NCBI RefSeq assembly: GCF_902713615.1
Contig: NC_052147.1
Location: forward strand, 166,822,410-166,886,409
Source: Scyliorhinus canicula
Lineage: Eukaryota
Length of the DNA: 64,000 bases
Direction: 5' to 3'
Below the pieces are notes generated by a model. That model saw nothing but the letters and a program-made list of their open reading frames with translations. It did no database searches and was not told where the DNA came from. Both the position numbers and the translations under genes were made by a program. This document shows, one piece after another, positions 5,006-63,415 of the stretch (position 1 is its first letter; each line of letters begins with the position of its first letter).

Positions 5006-5038
5006 AGAACATAGAACATAGAACATTACGGCGCAGAT
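5006..5038 (-). mobile_element. Ultra-short (~33 bp) CR1/HE1 3'-tail insertion
   Basis: (ATAGAAC)n-ATTACGGCGCAGA matches the reverse CR1 3' end seen at 8267-8300. AGAT is duplicated, and the insert is absent at the paralogous site ~38705. Confidence 0.7.
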
Positions 5039-14550: not shown

Positions 14551-14929
14551 GACATACAATTACGTGCACTGCTAAAAGTTCGATAGCCTTTGGAGTACAA
14601 TCTGGAAGCAAAATACACAGGTAATTATGCATCAGCCATTGTGTAGAGTGCTGTAAATAAAGCACATTATTCTGAAAATGTACAGACTGCATCTTAACCG
14701 GTTTTGCAGTCAGTTTCAGCACTTACGCTGAACTATTGGAAACATACCTGTTGAATGTGTAATGCCAATTCTTCAGGAATGTCAGTGAAAGTGCTGTACA
14801 GTATCGGAAACACAATGGATTCCAATGCATTGTTGCCATCTTTATACAACAATTAAAATGAGACGGAAGCAAAACACATTCAGTGATACACAGGTGCGTT
14901 AAAATGGTTCTCTTTAGTGAATGTGACAT

Positions 14930-15023
14930 GTGTTTTGCTGTTTTCTGCTGAGTTCAAACTATTGCAATCATTAAAATAACAAAAGTGCAGTCCAGGGAGG
15001 CAATTCTGTCCAACATATAAATA
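14930..15023 (+). promoter_or_regulatory. Gamma-crystallin proximal promoter, copy 1: TATA box and candidate Maf half-site/Sox-like sites
   Basis: TATAAATA at 15016-15023, 66 bp before the ATG. T-rich-flanked TGCTGAG at 14946-14952 and AACAAAAG nearby. Conserved in all three copies; factor assignment is inference. Confidence 0.65.
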
Positions 15024-15081
15024 CCAAACTGTGTGAAGTGGTGAAACATAGTCAGTTACTCAGGTAAACTCTGAGCTCAAA

Positions 15082-16587: not shown

Positions 16588-16636
16588 TTTTTCATTGTAA
16601 AATATGATCTTAATTTATTGAATCAGTTGTCAACAT

Positions 16637-16642
16637 AATAAA
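16637..16642 (+). terminator. Polyadenylation signal, crystallin copy 1
   Basis: AATAAA 50 bp after the stop, at the equivalent position in all three copies. Confidence 0.8.
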
Positions 16643-17034
16643 TACTCTCTATTACACTGTCATCTTGTTTAAAACACATATTTTGAATTCTTGACAGAAA
16701 CCGCTCAAAGCAGCGTGACGTATCCGGTGGGCACCTGCACAATATCTCACCACAGTGATCTCAGATTTGTGATTTTCAGTAAAATGAAAAAATAGAGAAG
16801 CAGCAAATGTGTGGACTGATCCTCCAGAAAAACTGGGTCGGTGCCAATCCTCTGTTGATCTTACTAAAGCTTGTGCAGTCAACAGGAGATTATCTAATTT
16901 CTCTGGGTACTTCAGGCATTTTCTTTCTAGACATAGTGATCTGTTGGTGGTGGGGAGTGGTTTGGGAATTTGATGGGTGGCAGGTGGACCTGATACCAGG
17001 AGTGAGGTGGGAACGGATCTTTGCAGCTCGTTGG

Positions 17035-17252
17035 GGGTCGTTGGTCTTCTTCTGACATTGGAAGGAGCGCCTCCTTGTCCTGCTGCCTGAACTAATAGCA
17101 GCTGCCACTGCCTGCCAGGCAGAATTGGTGACCCTGCCGCTCGTCCTCCAACCTCCTCAGAAGAACAGGATGTCAAGCCTCTCATTCACAGCGTTGGGAA
17201 GCTTGGCCTGGTCGACATCGCCAAAGCCAGGAGCAGGTCTGCACGCTGCCAT
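17035..17252 (-). pseudogene. Relic of a Harbinger Myb/SANT-like DNA-binding gene (exon 1)
   Basis: Translates MAACRPAPGFGDVDQAKLPNAVNERLDILFF*GGWRTSGRVTNSAWQAVAAAISSGSRTRRRSFQCQKKTND, which aligns to the Myb exon at 26301-26535. Confidence 0.7.
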
Positions 17253-33785: not shown

Positions 33786-34109
33786 TGTGGATATAGTGAC
33801 GAGTAACCAGAGGTAGACCAAGATAGCTCAGAGTGCAGGTGTGGTTAATCATACTTAATATATATTTAATCTTATTTATTTAATCTCCAGTTTAGTTGTT
33901 GAAGAGAGAACAAACTCACAATATATTTGTTAGCGCTACTTTATAAATAATTTGCTTGAACTGGAAGAGTTCGAGTGTTAATGAACATCGAAGACAGGAT
34001 CATCCTGGTAAGAAGCAAATGAATAACATATATTACACACGGTAATATAACATGGTACCAGGTTATTGACTTCAAGAAAATTTACTAGATTAGATTAGAA
34101 TCAGCAAGA

Positions 34110-37100: not shown

Positions 37101-38480
37101 GGTATACACTGCGGGAAAAGATCTCATCATTGCTAATACGTTATCCAGATCAATTGACACAGAAAGTTCACCACCAGAATTTATTAGAGACATCGAGGCT
37201 CAAACGCAGTTATGCGCGGAGAATCTTCCGGCATCTGAAGAGACGCTACAACTGATTGGTCAAGAAACAAAGAAAGATGCAACCTTGCTAAGGGTGATGC
37301 ACCATTTCCAGCATAATTGGCCAAAGGGACAATGTCTACAATATCAAAACATTCAGACCGAGATAAAAGTAGTTGATGGGCTATTTTTACGAAATGACAA
37401 AATAGTAATTCCACTGAGTCTGTGCTCTGAGATGCTACACAAGATTCACAAGGGACATCTCGGAATTGGGAAATGTAAGAGGAGAGCATGACAAACAGTT
37501 TACTGGCCTGGCATCAACACAAAGATAACTGACATGGTCATGACATGTGATACCTGTCGGAAGCATCAACCTGTACAGTGTAAAGAGACACTTCAGCAAC
37601 ATGAGCTAACAACGTCACTACGGACAAAAGAAGGCATCGATCTGTTCCATGCTAGTGGTCGTGACTACGTTCTCATCATGGACTACTACTCAAACTTTCC
37701 GGAGGTTATGAAACTTCCTGATCTTACTTCTTCATCTGTCATAAAGGCTTTTTTCACGACATGGGATTCCGCACACTGTAATGTTCGATGTTTCGCGAAT
37801 TGGGAATGGACAGAGGTTTCAAATAACTACAACTTTTGTCATGTGACATCTAGTCCACACTACTCCCAACCCAATGGGAAAGCTGGAAACTGTTTTCACA
37901 TCATCAAACAACTTATCAGTAAAGTGAATGATTAACAATCTGACATACACTTGGCTTTGTTATCGTACCGAGCAATTCCATTAAGCTCAGGACTGTCACC
38001 AGCTCAAATGCTTTTTAACAGAGACAGCCGAACAACTTTACCTGCAATACAACTCAAAGATCCTGATCACTTGTATGTTCTCAACAAAATCAAAGAACAA
38101 TGTTCTAAACAGTGACAATGCTATGATCAGCACGCGATCAAGCTCAAACCCACTGACAAAAGATGAGACTGTCAAACTAAGAAATCCAGAGGGAGGATGG
38201 TCTGCTCTAGCCACTGTATTCAGGCAAACAGCACTGCGATCCTACATCGCCAAATCAGCTGAGGGGGCGATTTTTTGACGCAAATGGCAAGATCTACTGA
38301 AGAGTCGACTTCAATCACCAGATTTCCTACATTGAATCTAAATGAGCCACTCATTCGACAAAATTTACTTCACAGCAAGACAACAGACGGCGTTCACAAT
38401 GGCATTAAAATATCCACATCACCACTTCAACAGTTATAAAAGTCTAATAAAAGAAGAAAGAAACCCAACCGACTCAATTT
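34110..38480 (+). pseudogene. Gypsy gag-pol pseudogene
   Basis: Gag N-terminus (GNLNSNWK..KQQFQIYL), zinc knuckle CYRCGNAH at ~34917, protease LETGA (catalytic D to E), RT YVKD (from YVDD), RNase H and integrase; many stops. Confidence 0.9.
35221..35444 (+). mobile_element. Short poly(A)-tailed HE1-like SINE with 14-bp TSD
   Basis: TSD AACATG(A/C)TCAACTC at 35207-35220 and 35445-35458; nearly identical to 11812-12037. Confidence 0.9.
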
Positions 38481-38735
38481 ATAAATATTGGACTCTAAAA
38501 TGATACTTGACTTTGTATAATTATCAATATTGTCATAACTTGTACAGTTATACACATCCTTATTTATATTTTCCTGTTGTACAATTTTCTTTAACCAGTT
38601 CAGAAAATGTGTCAAAAAAAGGGGGATGTAGTAATCTACACACCTGTATGTATACAACGGGTAATGTTTAGAAGTAACAACTAAGTAATCCCTAGATGGC
38701 AGCATGAGAGTTGGTTAGAAAAGGCAGACTTGACA

Positions 38736-41700
38736 CTTCCGGTGGCGGCCATGCAGTAGGTGATCGCACATTTGGTAGCACTCGCTTGCGACGGAGCTTT
38801 TGGACCTTTCCTCCTGATTTTGTCAGAATTTTATCGGATTAATCAGTGGAGAGTGAGACAGTGGGGAAAAATTCCCAACCAGTATATGGAGCAGTGGACT
38901 AGAAGTGGCTTCACAAGGAGACATAGTCGAGCCAAGAAGGCGCGTGCAGAAACGGCACCACAGGAAAGCATGGCGGGGGCACAGGATCCTGGTGCGGTGG
39001 CACAGTGGTCGATGGTACAGCTGGTGAAGTTCTTCGAGGAGAGTTTCGCTAAAGTAGGATACGCTAGACCCGATTAAGGCATCGATGGATCAGGTGGAAC
39101 AGGGGCCACGGATGGGCGATCCAGAAGGTGGAGCAAAAGGTGTCCAAGCACGAGGACTATCTAACTGTGTCGGAGGCTGAGGTGGGGCTGATGAAGGACC
39201 ACCAGAAAAGACTGCAGGAGATGTTGGAGGATTTTGAGAACAGGTCCACTAGAGAGAACCTGAGGATCATATGCCTCCCGGAGGGTAGTGAGGGATCGGA
39301 CGCGAGGGAAATTGTGGCAAAGTATGCTGCAAAGGTTGATGTGAGAGGGCACATTTACTTGACCCTTGGAGGTGGACAGAATGCAAAGAGCGCTTGCGAG
39401 GAAGCCGCGAGCGAATGAACCGCCAAGGGCGATGGGCCAAGCAGTTGCGGAGCTGCAAGTGGGAGAACTGTGAGTTGCGCATCTACGAGGACCTGGGCGT
39501 GGAACTGGCCAAAAGGCGAGCCGGATTTAACAGGGCAAAATCAGCCCTCTTCAAGAAGGGGGTGAAGTTCGGGATGTTATATCCAACGTGTCTGTAGGTC
39601 ACTTTTGTGGGCCAGAAACTTTACTTTGAATCATCAGACAAAGCAATAAACTTCATCAAGGACAAAAGGCTGGCAGGGGTCGAAGGAGACTGAATCTTGG
39701 GGGAGGGCATTGCAGGATCGATTTGGTTTAAATTTATTTATGTGAGGTTCTGGATATGCAATGCTCTCTGCAAGAAGGGATCATTCTTGTTTTTTTGCCC
39801 CTTCCTTTTTCTTTGGTTTTCATTTTGTTAAGGTGTTTGAGCAGTTGTTCAGAAATGTAATTTAAATCTGTTCTGGTGTGTGATGGGTGGGGGGATTTTT
39901 TCTGCTATTTGTTTACTGGGGACTGTGATGCTCTGAATATGTATGTCTGAGCGGGGGGAAGGAGGGAGAACAGAAAGGAGCTAGGATGTCTGATGTCATG
40001 GGCGGGAGCTACCAGGTTAGCTAGGTGAGCTAGTTCACGGAAGCGCAGTGGCGGGTGAGCAGGTGATAAGCTTGGTATGGGGGGGTTGGGATTGTGATGG
40101 TGCTAATAGGGGTGGGGTGAGCTGCTCTGCTGACAGGGGAGGAACAGTTGCTTGGGGAAAAAAGGGAGGTCGAGGACGGCAGATGCCCGAGGCCAGGCCC
40201 GAGGAAGCGAGGGACGTGAGCTGGAGGCTGGCTTATGAAGGGTTGAGGGCCCCAATTGAAATTGAGGAAATAATGGAGGGGCTGGAGGCCATGTAGTCGG
40301 GTAAGGTCCCGAGACTGGACGGTTTCCCAGTGTAATTTTACAAGATGTTCTCAGAGATGTTGGGCCCAATGCTGGTGAGGGCATTTAATGAGGCAAGGGA
40401 GCGGGGTGTCCTTCCTCCAACAATGTCACAGGCCTCGCCCTCATTGAATCTGAAGCGGGAGAAGGATCCTGAGCTATGCAGGTCATACAGGCCAATCTCC
40501 CTATTGAATGTGGACGCCAAACTGCTGGCTAAAATTTTGACCACAACAATAGAGGAATGAGTTCCGGAGGTGATAGGGGAAGACCAGGCGGGCTTTGTGA
40601 AGGGCATGCAGCTTACGGCCAATGTTAGAAGGCTCCTAAACGTTATCATGACTCTCTTAGAGAGGGGGGAGGTGGAGGTGGTGGTTGCGATGGAGGCAGA
40701 GAAGGCCTTTGAACGGGTGGAGTGGAATTATTTGTGGGAGGTTTTAGGAAGGTTCGGTTTTGGACAGGACTTCATTCATTAGGTGCGGTTGCTCTATCAA
40801 GCACCAGTAGTAAGCGTGCGAACGAATCGGCCGATATCGGGCTACTTTAAGCTGCACCGGGGGACAAGTCGAGGGTGTCTCCTCTCCCCGCTATTGTTTG
40901 GTCTGGCTATGGAGCTATTGGCTATGGAGTTAAGAGCTTCTAGGAACTGGAAATGGCTGATCCGGGGGTGGAACACCGGGTCTCGCTTCACGCGGATGAC
41001 CTGCTCCTGTATATTTCTGACCCGTTAAGGGGGCTGGATTATGTGGATCCTAGGGGAATTCGTTCACTTTTCGGGTATAAATTGAACATGGGCTAAATTA
41101 AGATGTTCGCGATCCAGTCGAGGGAGCAGGACAGGAGAATTCGAGAGCTGGCGTTTAGAATGGTGGGAATGAGCTTTCGCTATCTGGGAATACAGGTGGC
41201 ACAGGAATGGGAGACATTGCACAAGCTAAACTTGTCCCGGCTTATAGAGCAAATGAAGGAGGACTTTAGGAGATGGGACATGCTCCCACTGTCACTGGCG
41301 GGGAGAGTACAGACCGTGAAAATGACGGTCTTCCCCAGATTTCTGTTTGTTTTTCAGTGCCTCTCCATTTTATCCCGAGGGCCATTTTAAACGTGTAAAT
41401 AGGCTGATTTTTGGGCTTTGTGTAAGTGGGCAAAACCCCGCGAGTGAAGAAAGTGTTGTCGAAGCGTAGCTGGGGGGAGGGTAGGTTGGCACTGCCTCCC
41501 CAAGTTTAGAGGATTTTTGGCAAGGTTTCGCTGATATCATCTCCATGGTACATGAATCAAAGGTGGTGCCGGGTCCGGAGGTGGCGATCTTTGGAGTGTC
41601 GTAAGAGGCGGGAGACAAGGGGGCGGGAGAGGCTGACATTTTGGCCTTTGCCTCCCTGGTAGCCCGGAGATGGATACTGATAATGTGGAGTGACACAAAG

Positions 41701-42600
41701 CCCGCAAAATCAGAGACCTGGGTTAGCGACATGGCTGGGTTTCTCAGTCTTGAGAAAATAACGTTTGCCCTTAGAGGGTCAATGTTAGGGTTCGTCCGGA
41801 GGTGGCAGCCGTTTGTCAACTTATTGGGGGAAAATTTAATGTCAGCAGAGGCAGAAATCTAGGGGCAGGGATGGTTTAAACTATTGCTTCATTGATTGGG
41901 GGCTTGAGGATCGTGTCAGGGATGGAAATGTCTTACATACATTGTTCATGTTGTTGTTATTGTTATTACGATTGTTATGGGGTTTAGAGAACCCCAAAGT
42001 GTATCATGGAGTTCACCTGACCCAGATTTTAACAGACACGTTTTAATAGATTGTGGTATGGGAAGCACACAGCCCACTCTACAGGTGTGGTACAGCAGAA
42101 ATGGAAAAGTCTTTTTTAAATGCAAAACAATGTTTATTCCATGAACTCAAGTTAACCTTTTTAAAACAAACAGAACATACATCTCAGCAACCATTAATTC
42201 AAATACAACCCCAAAAGAATAGAACACTATGTAATTCTTAAGCTGTCCTTTTAACATCGAGAAGACTTTAAAAAAAAACTTTCAGCAGAAGCACAACAGG
42301 TTAAAGTCACTACTAAGAGCAGTTATCAGTTTTAAATCACCAAAGGATCAATTTAAATTCTTTTGATTATCGAGAGAGACTGTAAGACACCTTTTGGCTG
42401 TGACTGCAGCTATCCAGCTCTGAAAACGAAACTAAAACACACCCTTCAGCAAACAGCCTAAAATTAAATTAAAAAGCTGACAGACAGCCCAGCTCCACCC
42501 ACTCTCTGACATCACTGCAGTAACAAACACCCATTTCTTAAAGGTGCTCTCACATGACACTATAAAACTATGAATACACCAATAAAATGTTTTCAAAAAA
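38736..42600 (+). mobile_element. L1-clade LINE, copy B, endonuclease region deleted
   Basis: Paralog of 5062-12442. The junction at AAGGGT (40238-40243) joins the equivalents of 6960 and 9840. Confidence 0.88.
41973..42559. mobile_element. Solo LTR (587 bp)
   Basis: TGTTATG..CATGACA termini, TSD CGAT/CTAT; paralog of 11575-12400. Confidence 0.8.
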
Positions 42601-43419
42601 ATAAAAGATCAACTCAAACCGGGTCCCCGCCTCTTCATGGATGTAGTGACGAGTAACCAGAGGTAGAGAGAGATAGTTCAAAGTGCAGGTGTTGTGAATC
42701 ATTGTTAATATATATTTAATCTTGTTTATTTAATCTCTAGTTTAGTTTTTGAAGAGAGAACAAACTCACAGTATATTTGTTGACGTTGCTCAATAAATAA
42801 TTTGCTTTAATTGGAAGAGTTTGAGTGTTAATGAACATCGATAACAGGATCATCTTGGTAAGAAGCAAATGAATAACATACATTACACAAGGTAATATAA
42901 CACTTTCCAAGTCACCAGTATCATTGCTTTGATTCTAGTTTTGTACGCAATTTCTTTATTTTAATACTGTCACTTATCTCTTTATTTATCACTGGATTTC
43001 TTTTATTGACTTATAGATGAAAAGGAAAAAGTTGGAATCTATGGGAAAGTTGTGGAGGATTGTGCCTAATTGGATAACTCATTCAAAGAACACAGCAGGT
43101 GGAGTGGGATGAGCCATAATCTCCACTTTGTGATTCAATAACTCTCGGTCAAATTGCTGTTTCTGACCTTGAGGATGCCATCTCTGGGAACGGAATTTGC
43201 TATTATGTCAAAATTATGTTCTGTTTCAGTCACGCAGAGCCTCTTTCCTCCTTCACTGATTTTTGTTTGGTTAAGAATTCAGCTCCCCGCTTCCTACTTT
43301 AGAACAAACATTCTAAAAATGAATTTGTTCACACTAACACCTGACGTACTATTGTTCTGTTTATTGTTCTAATATGGCTTCAGGTAAACTGAATTTGTTA
43401 AAATATTGCAACATAATAT

Positions 43420-44730
43420 CATGCACCAATAGATTCATAAACAGCTTCTTCCCTGCTGTTATCAGACTCCTGAATGGCTCTCTTATGGATTGAGTTGATC
43501 TTTTGAAATATCTTCGCTACAGTCATAGCACTATACTCCATATGCACAAATGAAGTTGGTTGTGGTGGCCGTAGGTCAATAATCTCAACTCCAGGACATC
43601 GGTGCAGTAGTTCCTCAGGGTAGTGTCCTAGTCTCAACCATCTTCAACTGATTCATCAATGACCTCCTTTCCATCATAAGGTCAAAGTGGGGATGTTTGC
43701 AGATGACTGCACAATGTTGAGCACCATTAGTGACCACCCAGATAATGAAGCAGTTCATGTGCAAATGAAGAAAGACTTGGACAATGTACAGGCTTGGGCT
43801 GACAAGTGCAATTTACATTCATGCCTCACAGGCGGCAGGCAATGACAATATCCTACAAATGAGGTTCTAACCACTGCCCCTTGACATTCAATGGCATTAC
43901 CATCGCTGCATCCCCCCTGGGAGTTACGATTGATCAGAACTGAACTGGACTAGCCACAGTAATACTGTGGCTACCAGGGCAGGTCAATGCTAGGAATCCT
44001 ACAGCGAGTAACTTTCCTCCTGACCCCCCAAACCCTGTCCACCATCTACAAGGCACAAGTCAGGAGTGGAATGGAATACTCTCCACTTGCCTGCATAAGT
44101 GCAACTCCAACAACACTCAAAAGCTTGACACCATCCAGGACAAAGCAGCCCCATTGATTGCTCCTCCTTCCACTAACATTCAAAACATTCATGGATGAAC
44201 AATGGCAGCCGTGTGTACAATCTACTAGATGCACTGGAGCAATTCACCAACGTTCCTTGGACAGTGCCTTACAAACCCATGACCACTACCATCTACAAGG
44301 ACAAGAGCAGCAGATGCCTGGGAACCCCACCATCTGAAGGTTGCCCTCCAAGTAACACATCACCCTGACTTGGAAATATATCATCGTTTCTTCACTGTCG
44401 CTAGTGCAAAAAACTTGTAACTCCCTCCAGAACAGAACAGTGGTGTACTTACACCTCAATGACAGCAGCGGTTCAAGAAGGCAACTCACCACCACCTTTA
44501 GAAGCACAACTAGGGATGGGCAATAAATGCTGACCTAACCAGGGACTCCCACATCACATAAATGAATAAAAAATGCAAGACCCGATGTCTATGTTTATGT
44601 ATTTACATCATGCATTTATCATATGTTCTCTGTTTTCATGTATGGAGTGGTGTGCCTGGACTGTACTTAGAACAATACTTTCACTGTACTTCGGTATACG
44701 TGGCTCTAAGTCAATTTCTAAATCAAATCG
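43420..44730 (+). mobile_element. Rex-like relic plus CR1-supergroup LINE fragment (cassette copy 3)
   Basis: Paralog of 13261-14550. Confidence 0.6.
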
Positions 44731-45109
44731 ACATACAATTACGTGCACTGCTAAACGTTCGATAGCCTTTGGAGTACAATCTGGAAGCAAAACACACAGG
44801 TAATTATGCATCAGCCATTGTGTAGAGTGCTGTAAAGAAAGCACATTATTCTGAAAATGTACAGACTGCATCTTAACCGGTTTTGCAGTCAGTTTCAGCA
44901 CTTACACTGAACTATTGGAAACATACCTGTTGAATGTGTAATGCCAATTCTCCAGGAATGTCAGTGAAAGTGCTGTACAGTATCGGAAACACAATGGATT
45001 CCAATGCATTGTTGCCATCTTTATACAACAATTAAAATGAGACGGAAGCAAAACACATTCAGTGATACACAGGTGCGTTAAAATGGTTCTCTTTAGTGTA
45101 TGTGACATG

Positions 45110-45202
45110 TGTTTTGCTGTTTTCTGCTGAGTTCAAACTATCGCAATCATTAAAATAACAAAGGTGCAGTCCAGGGAGGCAATTCTGTCCAGCATATAAA
45201 TA
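45110..45202 (+). promoter_or_regulatory. Gamma-crystallin proximal promoter, copy 3
   Basis: TATAAATA at 45195-45202; TGCTGAG at 45125-45131; AACAAAG Sox-like motif. Confidence 0.65.
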
Positions 45203-45260
45203 CCAAACTGTGTGAAGTGGTGAAACATAGTCAGTTACTCAGGTAAACTCTGAGCTCAAA

Positions 45261-46787
45261 ATGGGGAAGGCAAGGATAAATCAGAGTTTATATATTGAAT
45301 TGGAATTCTTCATAGCCTAATTTGACAAGTTATTAATTTAAAAACCTGTGACTTTTTCCACAGATTATCTTTTACGAGGACAGGAACTTCCAGGGTCGGC
45401 ACTATGAGTGCAGCAGTGACTGTGCTGACCTGTCCCCTTACTTCAGCCGCTGTAACTCCATGCGAGTCATGAGTGACTGGTGGGTAATGTATGAGAGACC
45501 CAATTACATGGGATACCAGTATGTTCTGAGCAGGGGAGAATATCCTGACTACCAGCGCTGGATGGGATTCAATGACAATATCAGATCATGTCGCTCCTAC
45601 CCATATGTAAGTTGCTTTTGGTGATTTATATTTTATATCCATACTGAGCTTTAGAAAATGATCAGTGTGCTGAACTTTGACTTTGTGCACATCAGCTCTG
45701 AAGAGTCATCAGCTGTTTTGACAGGACTGATTTTAACTTTGGTCAGTGGTGGTTAACAGGTAGTGAATTGTCTGCCTGTCAAACATTCAGCCTGATTTAC
45801 CAATCCACTGGCATGTCTTTTGGTCATTGCCTGAAGTTAATTTTGTAATTTTTCAGACGCTGTTAAGGCTTGCGAGATGGACCTTAATGTATTGGTTGTG
45901 CAAACTGAGTTTACATCTGGGTGTCATGTCGACACTCTGTTGCAAAATCTGGTGTAATTAGATATATTTATTGTCGATTAATCAAATATTTAGAACTGAA
46001 ATCCGTTTTGATGCATTGATGTTGCTGAAAGTAATTAAATCATCTACAGGTAGACTGAGACATGATTGGCAACAATGTGGTGACAGACATATGCCTACTC
46101 ACTATCTTATTGTAAATGTTTAATACTTTCTAGGAAAGAGAAAGCTGTTCCCACACAGAGAAACAGAGAAACAAGCCGATCTCAATAGGAAACAGAAATA
46201 TATACAGCTTATTACTGATATTGATAAACCTCTGTCTGTGTGCACCAACTAATATCAGCCCTGTGCACTCTTACTCACACATCACTGATTAACTGTTTAA
46301 AATTAGATAGGAGCTGCTTGTTGGTAACAAGTCTAAAAGATAATTAACCTCTTGAATCGACGTTAACAAATTATCTCAGCTTTGTTCTCATTGTTGATCT
46401 CATCATCTGAGGCACCATTATATTCCTTCCTTCACAATGTTTCTCTTTTACTGCATATAACAAATGTATATTTATTATTTAATCATTAATATAATCTGTT
46501 TTCTATTACAGTACCGAGGCGGAAACTACAGAATGAGGATTTACGAGAGGCCTGACTTTGGAGGACAGATGATGGAATTCATGGATGACTGTCCATCTGT
46601 CTACGATCGTTTCCGTTACCGTGACATCCACTCCTGCCATGTGATGGACGGTTACTGGACCTTCTATGAACATCCCAACTACAGAGGCCGACAGTACTTC
46701 ATGAGACCCGGTGAATACAAGAGATACAGTGACTGGGGCGGCTACAACTCAACTATCGGATCTTTCAGACGCATGAGAGATTTCTAG
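45261..46787 (+). CDS. cryg: Gamma-crystallin, copy 3, 175 aa; exons 45261-45269, 45364-45606, 46512-46787
   Basis: Intact spliced ORF ...[20 protein letters not shown]...|[12 protein letters not shown]...RRMRDF*; GC-AG intron 1. Confidence 0.96.
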
Positions 46788-46836
46788 TTTTTCGTTGTAA
46801 AGTATGATCTTATTTTATTGAATCAGTTATCAGCAT

Positions 46837-46842
46837 AATAAA
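46837..46842 (+). terminator. Polyadenylation signal, crystallin copy 3
   Basis: AATAAA 50 bp after the stop. Confidence 0.8.
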
Positions 46843-47587
46843 TACTCTTTATTACACTGTCTTCTTGCTTAAATCACATATTTTTATTTCTTGATCGAAA
46901 CTTTTCAAAGCAGTTCAACTTTTCAGGTGGGCACCTGCAGAATATTTCACCACAGTGATCTCAGGTTTGCGAATGTCATTAAAATGAAAAAATAGAGAAA
47001 CAGCAAATGTGTGGACTGATCCTGCCAGAAAAACTGGGTCGGTGCCAATCCTCTGCTGTTCTTACTGAAGTTTGTGCGGTCAATAGGAGATTATCTAATT
47101 TCTCTGGGTACTTCAGGCACTTTTTTGCGAGAAATGGTACTCTGTTGTGGGATGGGGGGGTGGGGGGAGGGGAGGGGTGGCGGATGGGGGTGGTGATGAG
47201 TGGGTTTGTGAAACTGAGGGGTAGCATATGGACCTGATGCGAGGAGAGAAGTGGTAACGTAATCTTGAAGCTCGGTGGAGATCATTGGCCTTCTTCTGAC
47301 ATTGGACGGTGGATTAAGGTCTTTGGTTTGCAGCCTATAATGGTCGTCTCAGTTGATCCATTCATTCAGGTTCTCTGCAGTTTAGAAACACAGTACTCCC
47401 AACTTCCCTGGGGAGGCACCTTACTTCTCTTCAAACCTTGATTTCAGTTTGTGGTTTGTATTCAGGCCTCTGTTATCTCAGCAATACCGACCGACCCCCC
47501 CCCCCCCCCCGATAACGCTTACAGAAGCGTTTTACAGATAGCTGACTGGATCTTTTTTCTGTGCTGCCAAAATCAAACCGAACCCTT

Positions 47588-52217: not shown

Positions 52218-52627
52218 TGATGTGTTATGTACTCTGGGATAACGCAGGCTCCAACTGGATGCAGCTTTAACCAAAAGATACTCCAGACCTTGAAGTTAGT
52301 TAAATCTGATTTATTGAACCAGTAGCATAGTTAGCACAGTTCTCTATGAGTTCGACTCTCTGCTCACCTAAGTGTGCTTATTCTGACTGAACCAGACTAG
52401 CTCTTAGCCATGTGCTGGAGATGTGAAACTGTACATACACCTTGACTCACTCTGTAGATGTTCATCAGTGGAAAGAGGCAGGGTGTGAGTGCCTCGTGCC
52501 TTTTATAGTGAGATGCCACCCCTGAGTGTCCTGCCTGCTCATTGGTCATGTCCTGTTCTCTGTGTTCATTAGCTGCCTGTCTATGCCTGTCAGTATTTCA
52601 TTATCTGCATGTCTGCGTATCATGACA
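52218..52627 (-). mobile_element. Solo LTR (410 bp) inserted in the end of a Harbinger-like MITE
   Basis: TG..CA termini, 5-bp TSD AATCC (52213-52217, 52628-52632), minus-strand TATAAAA and AATAAA. Confidence 0.75.
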
Positions 52628-52822
52628 AATCCTACCCATGTTTACAATAGGGTAATTATATTAGATGATTTCAACTTTCCTAACATTAATTGGGATCATC
52701 ACCGTGTTAAGGGCTTAGATGGAGTGCAGGTCTTAAAATGTATACATGCTAACTTTTTAGCTCAAAATGAAGAGGGTCCATCAAGGGATGGTACAGTGCT
52801 GGATCTCATTCTGGGGAATGAA

Positions 52823-52997
52823 ATTAAATGAAAATCGCTTATTGTCATGAGTAGGCTTCAATGAAGTTACTGTGAAAAGCCCCTAGTCACCACATTCCGG
52901 CGCCTGTTCGGGGATGTTGGTATGGGAATTGAACTGTGCTGCTGGCCTGGCTTGGTCTGCTTTAAAAGCCAGCGATTTAGCACAGTGAGCTAAACCA
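52823..52997 (-). mobile_element. Short tRNA-derived SINE with (CATTT)n tail (third family)
   Basis: TSD GGAATGAA (52815-52822, 52998-53005); same 3' end as the fragment at 56062-56130. Confidence 0.7.
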
Positions 52998-53416
52998 GGA
53001 ATGAAGCCAGGCATTGTTGATGTTTTGGTGGAGGAACATTTTGATGAAAGCAACAACATGGTACAGTTTAAATGTGTTATGGACAAAGAAATGGACAAGT
53101 TGGAAAAAAAGGTTGGTAATAGGAAGGAGTAAAAGTCCAGAGACATTCAGAATACGATGAGAAGGAAAAGAGAGGCTTTTAGCAAATACAAGAGAGCAAA
53201 TCAATGGAGACATTAGTGGAGAATAGAAAGTGCAGGATGGAGCTTAAGAAAGCACTTATGAGAGCAAAGAGGGTATACGAAGAGTGGGAAAAGTAGGGAA
53301 AATCCCAAGATTTGCTCACCAAGGAAATAGTACGGCCCATTAGGGACCAATGAGGAAATCTGTGGGTGGAGCCAGAGGACATTGATTTAATGTTGAATGA
53401 ACACTTGTGCTACTGT

Positions 53417-53739
53417 GGGCAGCACGGTAGCATAGTGATTAGCACTGTTGCTTCACAGAACCAGGGTCCTCGGTTTGATTCCCCGCTGGGTCACTGTCTA
53501 TGTGGAGTTTGCACGTTCTCCCCATGTCTGCGTGGGTTTCCTCCGGGTGCTTCGGTTTCCTCCCGCAGTCCAAAGACGTGCGGGTTAGGAGGATTAGCCA
53601 TGATAAATTGCCCTTAGTGACCAAAAAAGTTTCGATGGGTTATTGGGTTACGGGCATAGGGTGGAAATGACGGCTTAAGTGGGTCGGTGCAGACTCGATG
53701 GGCCGAATGGCCTCCTTCTGCACTGTATGTTCTATGTTC
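53417..53739 (+). mobile_element. HE1-type V-SINE, full length with CR1-type tail
   Basis: GGGCAGCACGGTAG head, V-domain, TATGTTCTATGTTC tail. Confidence 0.88.
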
Positions 53740-55617
53740 GATGAATACTTCATTTTTGGCTTCAACCAAGAGATTGAGGAGATAGTATAGAAATCAAGCA
53801 GAGAGACTGTATGGCTCTTGAGCAAATTATCAGAGGGAGTAACAAGGTATTGGAGGTGTTGGCAGGCTTAAAAGTGGATAACTCTCCAGGCCTGGATGTA
53901 TCCCAGGATGCTGTGGGAAGCAAGGGAGGAGATTGCAGAGGCTTTGATCCAAATTTTGAATTGTCTGTGGCCTCGGGGGAGGTGCCAGAGGACTGGAGAA
54001 CAGTTAATGTGGTCCAATTATTTAAGAAAGGTTGTAGAGATAAGCTAGGGAACTACAGACCAGTGAGTCTCACATCAGTGGTTGGCAAACTATTGGAGAG
54101 GTTTCTGAAGGAGAGAATCTACCTCCACTTGGAGAGGCAAGGTTCGATCAGGAATAGTCAGCATGGCTTTGGAAGCGGGAGGTCATGCCGAACAAACTCG
54201 ATAACATTTTCTGAGCATGTGACCAGGTGTGTAGATGAGGGGAGTGTTGTTGATGTAATTTATGTGGATTTCAGCAAAGCCTTTGACAAAGTCCCAAATA
54301 AGAGACTTATAAAGAATGCAAATGCATATGGGATACTGGGTAACTTGATAGGGTGGATTCAAAATTGGCTCAGTTGTAGGAGACAGAGGATGATGACAGA
54401 TGACGGTTTTAGTGACTGGAAGTCCGTGTCCAGTGGTGTAACTCAGGGATCTGTGATGGGGCCCCTATTGTTTGCTATTTATCGAAATGACATAGATGAC
54501 TATGTGGGGGTAGGATCAGTAAGTTTACAGATGATGCAAAGATTGGTTGGGTGGTTCACAGTGAGGTTGAGTGTCTTGGGTTACAGGAAGATATAGATGG
54601 TCAAATGGGCAGAAAAGTGGCAGATGGAAAGTGTGAGGCGATAAACTTTGGACGAGTAATTTGACAAGGAAGTATTCAATGAATGGCATGAGAAGTTCCG
54701 AAGAACAAAGGGATCTTGGCGTGTTTTTCCAGGTTAATAGGTTGGTGAAAATGGCATAAGGGACACTTGCCTTTATCAATCGAGGCATAGATTACAAAAG
54801 CAGGGAGTGCTTTTGTTATGCTCTAAGCGTTATTCTCTAAGCGTAGCATAAGCGGCTTCCTTGTGGTACACTTGACAAAGGAAGGTTCAGACATGGAGAT
54901 AACTTCAACACATTTATTAAACTATTTACACTTCTATTACTCGGGTTCAACACTACTGTTAATCCTTCTATAGCTACCCAGACTGACTAACCAGTCTGCT
55001 ACAATCCACGTGGTGGGAGTGATATTGAATCAACCCTGTGTCTGTACTCACTGACTGTCTCCACTGGAAAGAGGCCAATTATGTGTGTGGTGTCCTTTAT
55101 ATATGGGTTGGTGTAATGCCCTCCTGTGGTCGTGTCACCTCTGTGTGTATCGTGAATGCCCACTGGTCGTGTCCTATCTAACTGTTCTATTAGCTGAGTG
55201 TGTGTGTGTGATGTCTCTGGTGCTCCCTCTAGTGTCTAGATAGTCTACATGTATTTACATTAGCCCCTTGTGTATTTACAGTGATGCACATCACCACATC
55301 CCCCTTTTTTATATGTTACATATTTTCTGTACACTTAAAGAAAATTGAACAAAAAAACAGGCAGATAAGTTATGGTATGTACAAGTCAGGAAAACTGTGA
55401 TTCAACAATAAGTACAAATCATTTGTGTGAGTCCAAAAATCATCAATCATCATGGACAAATGTCAATCTTGGTGGGTTGGTGAATATGATGGTGACATGT
55501 TCTTATGAATGCCATCAGTGTCCCTGTGCCACAGGAACCAAGAAGTGGTCAAATCACTTCACTGTCTGATTTGGGGTCCCTTTTATTTCGATGTTTGTGA
55601 TAGTGATGTTGGATGGC

Positions 55618-56283
55618 ATCTTGTAGGTGACAAGTTGTTGACGTTGAAGATGTACCATCAACAGTATCATTGGAGGTCATGTATGTGCCATATGTTGAAG
55701 TTGGATAATTCTGTGCATACTGGTTCTGGCCAAATGCTGTGTAGGAAGGGTGATGCTGATGAGAACTGTTGAAGTTCGACGAATTGGAAACAGAATTGCT
55801 CCTCGCATAAATACCGGGTGAGAGTGTGAAACTAGAACCTTGCATCTGATAGGAATATGCCATTTGGCCAGGCTGGGGTGCAGCAAATCCTGGGCTGTAA
55901 CTAAGGCATCCAGTCTGCAGAGCAGATTGTGCTTGCAGTAGTCCTCCTTCGGTCTTGATTCCATAAGTGGGCAATCCGTAGTGCTGGCCTGTTTGAGAAT
56001 ATGCTGCAAAGAGTGCTGGCTGCTGCATTCCTGAATACTGGGTTTGTCCAGCATAAGCTGTCAGGGGCTTTTCACAATAACTTCATTTGAAGCCTACTTG
56101 TGACAATAAGCGATTTTCATTTCATTTCATTGACTGCACTGCTGGTGTGGAAAGAATGTGTGGGTATGGCTTAGAAGGATATAGCTGTGGTGAATATTGG
56201 TGTATTCCTCTTGGACTGTAGCCACTACTTATTATTACTGACCCAGTGTAATTGTCAAGTGATCCATCTCCTGTCATCGTCGT
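55618..56283 (-). pseudogene. EYA4: Intronless fragment of eyes absent homolog 4 (N-terminal P/S/T/Y-rich transactivation region), interrupted by a 66-bp SINE tail
   Basis: [148 protein letters not shown] matches vertebrate EYA4 as I recall it. The HAD phosphatase domain is absent. Confidence 0.9.
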
Positions 56284-56349
56284 CACCCTGAGCGTGCCGT
56301 CACTGAGTTTGCAGCACTCCCTGTCTGGAGAAAAGTCCGGCTTACGTGA

Positions 56350-57010
56350 ATCAGAGTTGGCGTTTGGTTGCTCTCCACTTGGAGTCTGGTCTGTTTCACC
56401 TGAGTCAGTGTTGGTTTGTCGATGCTCCTCGTATGGAGTCTGGTTTGTGTCACCTGAGTCAGTTGTAGTTTGTCAGTGCTCCCCGTCCGGAGGCATAGCA
56501 GGTTCACTGGAGTCATCTGAGATTTCTTGAAGCTGCACGTCTGGAGTCAGAACATGCAGGAATGCATTGACTTGTGGAAAGGTTCGAGCGAATGAGGTTG
56601 GAAGTAACGTGGTGTCACCGGAGTCACCAGTGGTCTCACAGTGATTGTCGTGTGCCTCTGTACACACTAGCTGAGGTCTGTCACATTGCACATCTTGCAT
56701 GGGAAGTGGGATGCTGTCGTCACTCGTCTCACATACAGTGGATAGAGCCTCATTTCATTTTTCATTTCAGTAGCTTCTTGTTGTTCATTTGGGCTGGGTA
56801 AACTGTCAGAGTCTTCTCCTTGTGGCTCAGATAATGTGGGTGGACCGTCATAGTCGCTTTGTTGTTCATTTGGGCTTGGACTGTCATAATCGCTTTGTTC
56901 TTCACTGGAGCATGATAGACCGTCATGGTCGTCCTGCTGTGCACTGGTGTGTGATAGACTGTCATAGTCTTCTTGCTGTTTACTTGAGCATGGCAAACTT
57001 GCATAGTCTG
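56350..57010 (-). repeat. Coding tandem repeats (~39-bp EQQ.DYD.LP units and 54-bp TDSG.T.QTP..EHRQT units)
   Basis: Visible in ORFs 56667-57323(-) and 56473-56700(-) and in their readthrough. Confidence 0.7.
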
Positions 57011-57153
57011 CTGCTACTTGGTCAGAGGAGGTTGCTAGACCCTCATGGTCTTGTTCCTGCAAGGACTGCGCTTTGGAGACTTGCGTTTCTGCAATCGTGG
57101 AGTCTGTCCACGAGCTCGGTGTGGAGGCCTGTGACACTGGAGTCACTTCTTGT

Positions 57154-57444
57154 TCATGCAAGGACTGCGGTGTGGAGTCTGTTTTCCTCAAAGTATTTAC
57201 CGAATTTATCCAGGACTGCCTGGAAGTTGCTCCTGTTTTGCCTTTTGGAGAACTTGAACGTTTTAAAGATTTCTTCTGCTCTGGCACCGGTGATGGTGAG
57301 CAGAAGCTCTGTCTTTTCAGCATTGGCCATGTCTTGTAGGTCGGCTGCTACCAGGAAGATTTGAAACCTTTTCCGGAATGCCCGCCAGTTTTCGCGGAGA
57401 TCTCCGTGGTACTGGAGCTGCTGCGGAACCGGGATCTCGAACAT
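57154..57444 (-). pseudogene. Gypsy Gag N-terminal fragment
   Basis: VPQQLQYHGDLRENWRAFRKRFQIFLVAADL..KTELLLTITG..AEEIFKTF is homologous to the Gag at 34119-34409; ATG ~80 bp from the 5' LTR end. Confidence 0.82.
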
Positions 57445-58344
57445 CCCGCCTGGGTATTATTGCTGGTTGTCACTGTACGCTGAGTTTTAGCTATATGGAT
57501 TTGAACAGTTCACTCTGGTACCATGTCTTGTTGTGCTCTAAGCGTAGCATAAGCAGCTTCCTTCTGATGCACTTGACAAAGGAAGGTTCAGACGTGGAGA
57601 TAACTTCAACACATTTATTAAACTATTTACACGTCTATTACTCGGGTTCGACACTACTGTTAATCCTTCTATAGCTACTCAGACTGACTAACCAGTCTGC
57701 TACAATCCACGTGGTGGGAGTGATATTGAATCAACCCTGTGTCTGTACTCACTGAGTGTCTCCACTGGAAAGAGGAAGATCATGTGTGTGGTGTCCTTTA
57801 TATATGGGTTGGTGTAATGCCCTCCTGTGGTCGTGTCACCTCTGTGTGTATCGTGAATGCCCATTGGTTGTGCCCTATCTAACTGTTCTATTGGTTGAGT
57901 GTGTGTGTGTGATGTCTCTGGTGCTCCCTCTAGTGTCTAGCTAGTCTACATGTATTTACATTAGCCCCTTGTGTATTTACAGTGATGCACATCACCACAG
58001 GAAGGTCATGTTGGTGTTGCCTAGAACTTTAGTGAGGCCAGAGCTGGAGTACTGTGTGCAATTCTGCTCGCCACACTGTGGGAAGGATGTGATTGCACTG
58101 GAGAGGGGGCAGAGGTGATTCACCAGGATGTTGCCTGGGATGGAACATTTACGTTATGAAGAGAGTTGGGTAGGCTTGAGTTGCTTTCACTGGAACAGAG
58201 AAGACTTTGGGGTGACCTGATCTAGGTTTTCAAGATTGACATGAGTAAGAACTTTTTTAAGCAGGGGTTACTAGGTTTCTGGAATTTGCTTCCCGAATGG
58301 TGGTGGAGGCAGAGATCCTAAACTCTTTAGAAAAGTACCATTCT

Positions 58345-61300
58345 TCCAGCGGAGCAGGCAGAGAGTGGAGCGATTTTTTGAGGGGAGAGATGAAAGGTAA
58401 GCTGAATTTTTGATTTTTAACTTACTTTTCGGAGCAGGAAACCGGAAGTCGGCCGTGGGGAGACCTGGGAAGGTTGTATTACCCAATAAATTTGAACAGT
58501 GAGGAAACCCGAGACACTACACGTGTAGTGTCTCCCACCCTCCCTCCTTCTCTAACCTAAAAAAAAAGACTCAGTGCTGTGAGCAGGTAAGTTATTTACG
58601 GTTTTTTTCTTTTTTGCTGGGAGACTAAGTAGAGGTGATGGCAGCTAGGACAGCGGAATGTTCCTCCTGCAGAATGTTTGAGGTAAGGGAGACCACCGGT
58701 GTCCTTGCTGACTTCACCTGCACGAAGTGCAGCCATCTCCAGCTCCTCACAGACCGTGTTAGGGGCCTGGAGCTGGAGCTCGATGAACTGAGGATCATTC
58801 GGGAAGCTGAGGGAGTGATAGATTGAAGCTCCAGGGACCAAGTTACACCTGAGAACAAAGGTAGCTGGGTAACAGTTAGAGATGGGAGGAGGAGGAAGCA
58901 GTCAGTGCAGGAATTCCCTGTGGTTGTTCCTCTCAACAATAAGTATATCGCTTTGGATACTGTTGGGGGGGGGGGGATTACCCAGCAGGGGTAGGCTGCA
59001 GTGACTGGGTCTCTGGCACGAGGTCCGGCTCTGGGGCTCAGAAGGGAAGGGGGGAGATTAGGAGAGCACTAGTTATAGGGGACTCAATAGTTAGAGGTAC
59101 AGACAGGCTGTTCTGTGGGCACGGGCGTGACTCTCGGATGGTTTGTTGCCTCCCGGGTGCCAGGGTCCATGACATCTCGGATTGTGACTTCAGGATCCTT
59201 AGGGGGGAGGGTGAGCAGCCAGAAGTCGTGGTGCACATTGGTATCAACGACGTAGGTAGGAAAAGGGGTGTGGCTGTAATAAACAAGTTTAGGGAGTTAG
59301 GCTGGAAGTTAAAAGCCAGGACGGACAGAGTTGTCATCTCTGGTTTGTTGCCGGTGCCATGTGATAGCGAGGCTAGGAATAGGGAGAGAGTGCAGTTGAA
59401 CAAGTGGCTGCAGGAATGGTGTAGCAGGGAGTGTTTCAAGTATTTGGATAATTGGAGTGCATTCTGGGGAAAGTGGGACCTGTACAGGCAGGACGGGTTG
59501 CATCTGAACCAGAGGGGCACAAATATCCTAGGAGGGAAGTTTTCTAGTACTCTTTGGGAGGGTTTAAACCAATTTGGCAGGGGAATCGGAACCAGATTCA
59601 TAGTCCAGCAATTAAGGGAGCTGATGTTCAGGACGCCAAAGCATGTAATGAGGCAGTGGGGAAGGTAACACTGACAAAGGAGAGTATTTGCAGGCATGGA
59701 GATGGGTTAAAGTGTGTATACTTCAACGCAAGAAGCATCAGGAATAAGGTGGGTGAACTTAAGGCATGGATCGGTACTTGGGACTACGATGTGGTGGCCA
59801 TCACGGAAACATGGATAGAAGAGGGGCAGAAATGGTTGTTGGAAGTTCCTGGTTATAGATGTTTCAATAAGATTCGGGAGGGTGGTAAAAGAGGTGGGGG
59901 CACTGCTAATTAGAGATAGTATAACAGAAAGGCAGTTTGAGGAGGATCTGCCTAACTGAGGTAGTATGGGTTGAAGTCAGAAATAGGAAAGGAGCAGTCA
60001 CCTTGTTGGGAGTTTTCTATAGATCCCCAATAGCAGCAGAGATGTGGAGGAACAGATTGGGAAACAGATTTTGGCGGTATGGGACAATTGGGCGCGGCCG
60101 TTTTGGCGCGGCCATTTGGACGCAGCCGTTTGGGCGCCATGGGACAATTGGGCGCAGCCAATTTGGCGCGGCCGTTTGGGCGTAGACGACAGAATTTTTT
60201 TTAGTTTTTGTGGCTAGTAAATTGTTGCAAGTAAATTGTTGCAAGATTCAGTATCATTCGAAGGAAGGACTTAAAAGCAAGCTTAAAACTGTAAATTAAA
60301 AGATGAGCTTTAAAAAGTTTTTAAACTAACTTTACTGTAAATTAAAAACCTTAAATTAGTTCATTTAGTTAAAAACCTTAAATTAGTTCATTTAGTTTAG
60401 TTCATTTGGTAATTATGAGCAAGGCTCCTCAAGTACTCGATAGCATCCATGTTTTCAAATTTAAGAACAGTTTCATGTATTCTTTTATCTGCATCTCTAT
60501 ACTTTTTTAGTTTTTGTGGCGGTTCATGGCCGGCTAGTAACCTTTCATAATATGCATCTCTACCTTTCTGTACTTTACGCAGGCCATCAATTAGTTTCCA
60601 TATGGTGGGATGATGTATGCCAAGTTCGTATTTCAATCGACGGTGGGCTGCCTCCGCATTATTGTTTGTGCGGTCTTCCTCGTTTAATGTTCTCTGACAA
60701 AGGTTCCAAATCTCAGGGCGAAATAAAGGTGTTCGTCTACCATTTCCAACGAAACACTTGTGACAGCGGACCCGCACCAGCAGCCAATTCAACTGAGGCT
60801 AATTTACAAATAAAGAAATGTTATTATGGCCAAAACGTCCGGCGCCAAAACGTCCGGCGCCAACACGGCTGGCGCCAAAACGGCTGGCGCCAAAACGGCC
60901 GCGCCACAACGGCCGCGCCCAAATGGCTGCGCCAAAACTTACCTAACCCGATTTTGGAAAGGTGCAGAAGTCACAGGGTAGTATTCATGAGGGACTTCAA
61001 CTTCCCAAATATTGAGTGGGAACTCTTTAGATCAAATAGTTTGGATGGGATGGTGTTTATGCAGTGTGTCCAGGAAGCTTTTCTAACACAGTATGTAGAT
61101 TGTCCGACAAGAGGGGAGGCCATATTGGATTTGGTACTTGGCAATGAACCAGGGCAAGTGATAGATTTGTTAGTGGGGGAGCATTTTGGAGATAGTGACC
61201 ACCATTCTGCGACTTTCACTTTAGTAATGGAGAGGGATAGGTGCGTGCAACAGGGCAATGTTTACAATCGGGGGAAGGGTAAATACGATGCTGTCAGACA

Positions 61301-63415
61301 AGAACTGAAGTGCACAAGTCGGGAACATAGGCTGTCAGGGAAGGACACAATTGAAAAGTGGAACTTGTTCAAGGAACAGATACTACGTGTCCTTGATATG
61401 TATGTCAGGCAGGGAAGAGATGGTCAAGTGAGGCAGCCATGGTTGACAAGAGAGATTGAATGTCTTGTTAAGAGGAAGAAGGATACTTATGTAAGGCTGA
61501 GGAAACAACAGGGCATTGGAGGGATACAAGATAGCCAGGAGGGAATTGTAGAAAGGGATTAGGAGAGCTAAGGGAGGGCATGAAATATCTTTGGCGGGTA
61601 GAATCAAGGAAAACCCCAAGGCCTTTTACACATATGTGAGAAGTATGAGAATGACTAGAGCGAGGGTAGGTCCAATCAAGGACAGTAGTGGGAGATTGTG
61701 TATTGAGTCTGAAGAGATAGGAGAGGTCTTGAACGAGTACTTTTCTTCAGTATTTACGAATGTGAGGGGCCATATTGTTGGAGAGGACAGTGTGAAACAG
61801 ACTGGTAAGTTTGAGGAGATACTTGTTAGGAAGGAAGAAGTGTTGGGCATTTTGAAAAACTTGAGGATAGACAAGTCCCCCGGGCTTGACGGGATATATC
61901 CAAGGATTCTATGGGAAGCAAGAGATTAAATTGCAGAGCCGTTGGTAATGACCTTTTCGTCCTCACTGTCAACAGGGGTGGTACCAGGGGATTGGAGAGT
62001 GGCAAAAGTCATGCCCCTGTTCATAAAAGGGAATAGGTATCATCCTGGGAATTATAGGCAAGTTAATCTGACTTCGGTGGTAGGAAAAGTAATGGAAAGG
62101 GTACTGAGAGATAGGATTTCTAAGCATCTGGAAAGACACTGCTTGATTAGGGATAGTCAGCACGGATTTGTGAAGGGTAGGTCTTGCCTCACAAGTCTTA
62201 CTGAATTCTTTGAGGAGGTGACCAAGTACGTGGATAAAGGTAAAGCAGTGGATGTAGTGTACCTGGATTTTAGTAAGGCCTTTGATAAGGTTCCCCATGG
62301 TAGGCTTATGCAGAAAGTAAGGAGGCATGGGATAGTGGGGAATTTTGTCAGTTGGATAACCAACTGGCTAACCGATAGAAGTCAGAGGGTGGTGGTGGAT
62401 GGCAAATATTCAGCCTGGAGCCCAGTTACCAGTGGCATACTGCAGGTATCAGTTCTGGGTCCTCTGCTGTTTGTGATTTTCATTAATGACTTGGATGAGG
62501 GAGTTGAAGGGTGGGTCACTAAATTTGCAGACGATACGAAGATTGGTGGAGTTGTGGATAGTGAGGAGGGCTGTTGTCGGCTGCAAAGAGACATAGATAG
62601 GATGCAGAGCTGGGCTGAGAAGTGGCAGATGGAGTTTAACCCTGAAAAGTTTGAGGTTGTCCATTTTGGAAGGACAAATATGGATGCGGAATACAGGGTT
62701 AACGGTATGGTTCTTGGGAATGTGGAGGAGCAGAGAGATCTTGGGGTTTATGTTCATAGATCTTTGAAAGTGGATAGAGCTGTGCAGAAGGCCTATGGTG
62801 TGATAGCGTTCATTAGCAGAGGGATTAAATTTAAGAGCCATGAGGTGATGAGGCAGCTGAACAAAACCTTGGTAAGGCCACATTTGGAGTACTGTATGCA
62901 GTTCTGGTCACCTCATTTTAGGAAGGATGTGGAAGCTTTGGAAAAGGTGCAAAGGAGATTTATCAGGATGTTGCCTGTAATGGAGAGTAGGTCTTATGAA
63001 GAAATGTTGAGGGTGCTAGGCCTTTTCTCATTAGAACGGAGAAGGATGAGGGGCGACTTGATAGAGGTTTATAAGATGATCAGGAGAATAGATAGAGTAG
63101 ACAGTCAGAGACTTTTTCCTCGGGTGGAACAAACCATTGCAAGGGTTCATAAATTTGAGGTGAATGGTGGAAGATATAGGTGGGATGTCAGAGGTAGGTT
63201 CTTTACCCAGAGAGTGGTGGGGCATGGAATGCACTGCCTGTGGAAGTAGTTGAGCCAGAAACATTCGAGACCTTCAAGCGGCTATTGGATAGGTACATGG
63301 ATTACGGTAGAATGCTGGGGTGTAGATTGATTTGTTCATAATCTCGGACAAAAGTTTGGCACAACATCGTGGGCCGAAGGGTCTGTTCTGTGCTGTATTT
63401 TCTATGTTCTATGTT
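58345..63415 (+). mobile_element. Near full-length CR1 LINE: ORF1 (zinc finger, leucine zipper, SGNH esterase) and ORF2 (EN, RT), disabled
   Basis: CSSC..CTKC..L..RV..LE..LDEL, VIGDSIVR, DGLHLN; YFNARSIRNK, ITETW, SDH, FADD; tail TCTATGTTCTATGTT. Confidence 0.92.
60075..60949 (-). mobile_element. Internally deleted Mutator-like (MULE) DNA transposon with foldback-type subterminal repeats
   Basis: 8-bp TSD GATTTTGG (60067-60074, 60950-60957). Inverted arrays of ~15-bp GGCGCCAAAACGGC repeats. ORF 60397-60792(-) has PLFRPEIWN..RTNNNAE..H..L..HPTIWKLI, a MULE transposase C-terminus. Confidence 0.8.

Follow-up and report, generated by a model that had tools for sequence, protein, structure and literature searches.

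The classical model of retroviral transduction combines read-through with splicing, and models of the process were reportedly set out by Swain and Coffin in 1992 and by Goodrich and Duesberg in 1990 (cited in PMC5131818). Capture of FAM8A1 by HERV-K is another example of retroviral acquisition of a host sequence. Host mRNA can also be acquired through long terminal repeat (LTR) retrotransposons, and such LTR-mediated retroposition has been described in fly, mosquito, zebrafish, chicken, and mammals, with in-frame chimeras and occasional secondary retroposition among its products (Tan et al. 2016, Genome Res 26:1663; PMC5131818). The classic amplified chimera of this type is Bs1 of maize (PMC5131818). 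Here, we describe a related case in a stretch of 64,000 nucleotides from the catshark Scyliorhinus canicula (contig NC_052147.1, positions 166,822,410 to 166,886,409 of the forward strand), referred to below as the window. Window positions 52549–59277 match LR744031.1 of assembly GCA_902713615.2 (166,874,958–166,881,686) at 100% identity. At window positions 54808–57999, a non-autonomous LTR retrotransposon of 3.19 kb, the sense strand of which is the minus strand, carries a part of eya4, an eyes absent gene. Very probably, this is a Ty3/gypsy-related LTR element without pol that, in an ancestor of Scyliorhinus, exchanged most of its gag-pol region for ~600 nt of spliced eya4 mRNA and an orphan acidic region and was subsequently amplified.

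The catshark chimera resembles the products of LTR-mediated retroposition (PMC5131818) in that an intronless, sense-oriented piece of host mRNA lies within an LTR element, the flanking element sequences are discontinuous, and in-frame chimeras are possible. However, most examples in that work are recent insertions with one copy each, whereas the catshark chimera is old, multicopy, and present in two species. With maize Bs1 it shares the lack of pol and the fusion of partial exonic cellular sequence into a hybrid open reading frame (ORF). Bs1, however, is a plant element that has been described as copia-like, contains pieces of three genes, and occurs in 1–5 copies, while the catshark element appears related to Ty3/gypsy, contains one identifiable gene piece together with the orphan acidic region, and is represented by at least 12 annotated copies. 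A further likeness is to retroviral transduction, where spliced host sequence also takes the place of genes needed for replication and becomes joined to gag, leaving a defective and helper-dependent element. Unlike transforming retroviruses, the catshark element lacks env and gives no hint of infectivity, and the captured piece is a disordered transactivation region rather than a complete or activated signaling protein. Our literature searches returned no earlier report for sharks or for EYA4; the mechanism is already known and, as far as those searches went, the shark and EYA4 case is unreported.

EYA4 origin of the captured segment

The EYA4-derived segment occupies positions 55618–56280 on the minus strand and corresponds to residues 115–313 of S. 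canicula EYA4 isoform X1. With this host protein (P0291, 643 aa) as the query, tblastn produced a single high-scoring segment pair at 56280–55618 (E = 1e-125), in which 184 of 199 residues (92%) were identical outside a 22-column gap. The longest ORF of the EYA4 region in the window copy (159 aa) was also queried against 1.84 billion representative proteins; its top matches fell into two groups, short models of S. canicula and S. torazame named "EYA4-like" and authentic EYA proteins. Identity of authentic EYA4 to the query, which was the EYA part of one chimera, tracked phylogeny, with values of 93% for S. torazame and Mustelus, 92% for Hemiscyllium and Chiloscyllium, 91% for Stegostoma, 90% for Heptranchias, 85–88% for rays and skates, 85–87% for Chimaera, and 78% for birds. 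The paralogues were less similar, at ~57–62% for EYA1 and ~37–44% for EYA2 and EYA3. A preliminary description of this DNA, made from its letters without database searches, had judged the peptide to be EYA4-like rather than EYA1-like, and the protein search agrees, with EYA4 as the best named family (90–93% in sharks against ~57–62% for EYA1).

The captured region is the N-terminal variable, proline/serine/threonine (PST)-rich part of EYA4, and it is this part that carries Eya transactivation (PMC4793267, PMC7963430). Outside residues 115–313 of 643, the host protein had no match in the element, indicating that the C-terminal EYA/HAD domain is absent, as the preliminary description had also stated. 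PF00702 is recorded in most full-length shark EYA4 proteins and in none of the chimeras, which lack the C-terminal HAD-type phosphatase and SIX-binding domain of a functional EYA family member.

These observations bear on the public gene models for the family, eight from S. canicula and three from S. torazame, that are named "eyes absent homolog 4-like" (P0330, also from S. torazame, is named "uncharacterized protein"). Taken literally, the name would make the copies genuine short EYA4 paralogues. Seven further loci were read in addition to the window copy (L001, L002, L005, L007, and L008 from S. canicula and L006 and L009 from S. torazame), and each of them sits between the LTRs of one retrotransposon family. 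In addition, the EYA/HAD domain occurs in no model, and the N and C termini of the models are arbitrary and differ from one another, with some models running into neighboring repeats (P0087 and P0086). Genuine paralogy is thus extremely improbable. Model P0086 ("eyes absent homolog 4-like," 220 aa) lies in the window itself, at 55549–56277 on the minus strand, and consists exactly of the window's two ORF pieces of 51 and 169 residues; it skips a nested fragment of a short interspersed nuclear element (SINE) as a 66-nt intron, which results in an open predicted protein of 220 aa. Another model of the same name, P0087, is 369 aa long and lies at 8001–10455 of L005 (S. canicula LR744031.1, ~238.66 Mb). 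It was considered as a possible link between EYA4 and an integrase and was rejected, since its integrase-like part lies beyond the 3' LTR of that copy, and the annotation has merged two repeats into one model.

The S. canicula eya4 gene extends over 581 kb for its 643-aa product. The exon map was taken from the EYA4 genes of a bird (L003) and a catfish (L004) rather than from the S. canicula locus, and places exons, in host numbering, at approximately residues 98–128, 128–151, 151–199, 200–240, 241–267, and 268–329. The junctions agree between the bird and the teleost where both are readable (L004 starts at ~residue 128), and a Scyliorhinus isoform, P0188, skips ~residues 97–129, indicating that this exon is real in the host genus. 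By this map, the captured stretch crosses five exon junctions without introns, and its first and last residues each fall within an exon. Five junctions crossed without introns, together with a host gene of 581 kb, point to a spliced mRNA as the source. The earlier statement that this region is multiexonic in the host and intronless here is therefore upheld, with five junctions mapped on the bird and catfish genes and one of them confirmed in a shark.

With both ends of the segment thus intraexonic, splicing did not create either fusion point, and the location of the 5' junction in particular argues against formation of the chimera by read-through plus splicing. Template switching fits these fusion points better. 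No poly(A), TSD (target-site duplication) of its own, or flanking repeat was found around the EYA4 piece, which ends in coding sequence and directly abuts element sequence. The piece is intronless, as a retrocopy is, and is devoid of the poly(A) and TSD that characterize a processed pseudogene made by a long interspersed nuclear element (LINE). Capture of a host mRNA had been proposed in the preliminary description, and the spliced state of the segment, its intraexonic ends, and its lack of poly(A) and TSD bear this out.

Architecture, relatives, and insertion site of the element

In element sense, the 3' LTR (491 bp) lies at 54808–55298 and the 5' LTR (476 bp) at 57524–57999, both on the minus strand. 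They are direct repeats with TG..CA ends and are 95.5% identical across 470 bp. Counted from the sense start on the minus strand, each LTR has a TATA-like TATATAAAGG at ~195 nt and an AATAAA at ~380 nt, a spacing compatible with a U3-R-U5 layout if the motifs function as their sequences suggest. A tandem duplication of ~12–15 bp near the U5 end of the left LTR (54829–54860) is missing from the right LTR and from the other copies. The polypurine tract (PPT), AAAAAAGGGGGA, adjoins the 3' LTR at 55299–55310 (minus strand) and is kept, with small variation, in all eight copies. Immediately inside the 5' LTR is the primer-binding site (PBS), TGGTACCAGAGTGAACTG (57506–57523, minus strand), which is conserved in copy L006; the PBS-like TGGTACCAGAGTGAAC corresponds to 57523–57508 on the minus strand and likewise begins immediately inside the right LTR. 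The TSD reads GGGAG on the left (54803–54807) and GGAAG on the right (58000–58004) on the plus strand. Thus, the LTRs, PBS, PPT, and 5-bp TSD listed in the preliminary description are all present, with the qualification that the TSD is imperfect, with four of five bases alike.

No pol was found, as had been described: the internal ORFs of the window copy, and those of the longer L002 and L006 copies, had no match in Pfam, and by this measure reverse transcriptase (RT), RNase H, and integrase are lacking between the LTRs. Rfam had no match in 52500–58500. Between the PPT and the coding remnant is an internal region that would be 3' untranslated (55311–55548, minus strand) and is present in all copies. 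The final ~60 bp of it resemble the stretch that precedes the PPT in a Ty3/gypsy-like element of the window (~38540–38608).

This Ty3/gypsy-like element, which is degenerate, spans ~34055–38700 on the plus strand, and is partly duplicated at 1–2263. Among the pol-bearing elements seen here, it is the one most closely related to the chimera (RNase H, PF17917, E = 1.8e-25). The N-terminal ORF of the chimera (57157–57444, minus strand, 96 aa) is 39% identical (E = 1e-10) to window positions 34194–34385, which lie upstream of zinc-knuckle-like, protease-like, RT, RNase H, and integrase-like ORFs; we therefore refer to it as gag-like. In addition, the Ty3/gypsy-like element has, right after an LTR-like ...ACA end, a PBS, TGGTACCAGG, with a start near-identical to that of the chimera's PBS, and it has the identical PPT 12-mer, AAAAAAGGGGGA, at 38609–38620, followed by an LTR start similar to that of the chimera. 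The gag-like N terminus, PBS, and PPT suggest that the chimera, itself without pol, is related to Ty3/gypsy-type elements.

The window copy was inserted into an RT ORF of a LINE. The upstream half of this ORF lies at 53811–54807 on the plus strand (RVT_1 by Pfam on 53811–54593, E = 3.9e-20), and the ORF resumes after 58004, where the flank beyond 58000 matches other LINE copies. Joining of the flanks with a single TSD copy restores the reading frame of the LINE ORF, indicating that the element is nested in the LINE.

Amplification of the chimera

Five different chromosome records hold the S. canicula copies, that of the window included. The seven further loci all have the same LTR family, internal sequence, and both EYA4 junctions, at 82–93% nucleotide identity to the window copy, and the fusion points are the same in 8/8 copies, as in secondary retroposition. 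TSDs were readable in the four copies for which both LTR ends were mapped, namely L002 (ACAAC / ACAAC, perfect), L006 (CCGCC / CCGCC, perfect), L009 (TCTGC / TCAGC, 4/5), and the window copy (CTTCC / CTCCC on the sense strand, 4/5). The TSDs all differ among these four, and each of the four ends exactly in TG..CA. Comparison of flanks among the sampled loci revealed none that were shared and no orthologous insertion between S. canicula and S. torazame. Common junctions, unrelated flanks, and individual TSDs together indicate that the chimera transposed after capture. At least eight gene models in S. canicula and at least four in S. torazame derive from the family, a count that rests on gene models and is a lower bound; in protein searches, which were also based on gene models, none were seen in other sharks.

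Amplification as a family had been suggested in the preliminary description, along with a search for copies with the same junctions and different TSDs, and both are answered by the shared junctions and the four distinct TSDs. The alternative raised there, that family members without the EYA4 segment would exist and that the segment would have its own TSD or poly(A), was not encountered: all eight copies read carry the segment.

A variant of that alternative is that a LINE made a processed eya4 pseudogene inside one LTR element and that the other copies arose by segmental duplication. LINEs and SINEs are abundant and have been active here, as attested by the RT ORFs of the window, of which there are several, and by its nested SINE, which is 5'-truncated, and the window also holds a large segmental duplication. 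However, the EYA4 piece has neither poly(A) nor its own TSD, is cut within exons at both ends, and is in frame with the upstream ORF of the element, and the mapped copies end at TG..CA with different 5-bp TSDs and without common flanks. We consequently give this explanation almost no credence and retain capture by the LTR element followed by its transposition.

The repeats of the window include several features outside the chimera. The segmental duplication, between 1–17065 and 36398–47309, consists of several collinear blocks at 90–96% identity, and more repeats relate 27–32 kb to 13–19 kb or 43–50 kb. LINE ORFs lie at 60516–63249 (plus strand; an endonuclease, Exo_endo_phos_2, followed by RVT_1) and at 8780–9673 (minus strand; RVT_1), with ~74% DNA identity.

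Reading frame, age, and fate of the captured sequence

The EYA4 piece is in sense orientation and, in the best-kept copies, continues the reading frame of the gag-like/acidic ORF upstream of it. In L002, the interval from the gag-like ATG to the stop past EYA4 forms one frame that is 2553 nt long and contains two stops; a 581-aa ORF in it joins the acidic Ser/Asp/Gln-rich region to the EYA4 piece, after which comes a short basic tail. Similar fusions are found in S. torazame (P0330, 605 aa; P0085, 447 aa). The window copy retains the broken remnant of such a single fusion frame at 55549–57444 (minus strand), with the gag-like N terminus, acidic Ser/Asp/Gln-rich region, EYA4 segment, short basic tail, and stop. 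A homologue search with the acidic region, aimed at EYA-less relatives, returned chimeras only.

Damage to the window copy was counted relative to L002. It has one deletion, which removed ~0.8 kb of gag-like sequence that seven other copies retain; three other frame-shifting and three in-frame length differences; and one stop at aligned codons. It is therefore not the complete element of the preliminary description. Neither does it hold the ~200 continuous codons described there, since the EYA4 region is interrupted by the tail of a 5'-truncated tRNA-type SINE, antisense to the ORF, that brings two in-frame stops and leaves 159 aa as the longest ORF. This nested tail is 93% identical to the 3' tail of another SINE copy of the window and is missing from 7/7 other copies. 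Its source family is represented by a near full-length tRNA-type SINE at 52817–53010 (sense on the minus strand), the tRNA-like head of which was called neither by ARAGORN, which found no tRNA in the window, nor by Rfam. Further copies of the SINE tail occur in L001, L005, and L006.

The sequence of the captured segment carries information on its age. Within residues 115–313, three columns distinguish the EYA4 proteins of the two Scyliorhinus species, and at these columns the copies carry the outgroup-shark residue in 8/8, 6/8, and 8/8 cases. At one column only is a residue common to at least six of the eight copies and foreign to both hosts. Together, these residue states indicate that the founder held an essentially unaltered EYA4 sequence of ancestral Scyliorhinus type, which is compatible with capture before the split of S. 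canicula and S. torazame. The copies are 8–10% apart.

Several observations weigh against the proposed origin or parts of it. The template switches are deduced rather than observed, and an autonomous partner with the same LTR was not found. The Ty3/gypsy-like element of the window belongs to a different family, since its LTRs diverge from those of the chimera after ~100 bp and the gag identity is 39%. The gag-like label itself depends on that one 39% match: Pfam and a PDB sequence search (chance-level) were empty for this ORF, and an AlphaFold model of its 96 aa had a pLDDT of 49 and was unusable. Furthermore, the 199 EYA4 codons are free of stops and frameshifts in 8/8 copies, aside from the nested insertion of the window copy, whereas ~1 stop per copy was estimated to be expected, given that 5.4% of single-base changes in the window copy would produce a stop. 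This last observation could mean selection.

A rival reading is that the fusion ORF is functional and that its protein, or transcripts or small RNAs from the copies, help the element or were recruited by the host, where they might, for instance, interfere with eya4 or with SIX-EYA transcription. The captured part is the PST-rich transactivation region (PMC4793267), long in-frame fusion ORFs persist (581, 605, and 447 aa), and a gene prediction pipeline produced at least 12 models from the family. The EYA4 segments of all eight copies each form one high-scoring segment pair without stops or frameshifts, at 5–9% pairwise divergence and with 12–20 amino acid differences from the host. However, gene models that depend on an ORF led to seven of the eight copies, and the window copy, which was picked independently, carries such a model as well. 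This ascertainment favors open frames. In the true frame, pairwise ratios of nonsynonymous to synonymous substitution (Ka/Ks) among copies averaged 0.57 (range, 0.29–1.06), compared to 1.17 and 0.55 in two shifted control frames. The value of 0.57 was considered as an indication of weak constraint and was rejected, since a shifted frame gives 0.55. In addition, the amino acid changes are nearly all private to single copies, and the window copy is broken many times. With no detectable constraint, a functional fusion ORF appears unlikely. The more specific proposal that the gag-like/EYA4 fusion is expressed in catsharks and has a role, through a putative protein or through antisense or small RNAs matching ~600 nt of eya4 mRNA, is slightly less likely still. 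We saw no sign of selection on the EYA4 part, which is most likely a neutral passenger.

An origin by capture and amplification could have proceeded as follows. In a virus-like particle, RT may have switched templates twice between co-packaged element RNA and eya4 mRNA, producing the chimera. An autonomous relative with the same PBS, PPT, and LTR ends would then have supplied the enzymes in trans for copying of the pol-less chimera. The insertion in the window, into a LINE, is probably old and dead (its LTRs being 4.5% diverged) and was later hit by the 5'-truncated SINE and the ~0.8-kb deletion, with the EYA4 part presumably riding along.

In sum, the catshark family offers a clean vertebrate case in which an LTR retrotransposon very probably captured a spliced host mRNA and was then amplified, an animal counterpart of maize Bs1. 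At least 12 public models, under the names "EYA4-like," "protein phosphatase EYA4-like," and "uncharacterized protein," represent retrotransposon copies and would inflate EYA counts in comparative work. Beyond its bearing on annotation, the family constitutes a dated natural series of copies in which the decay or retention of a captured coding sequence can be studied.

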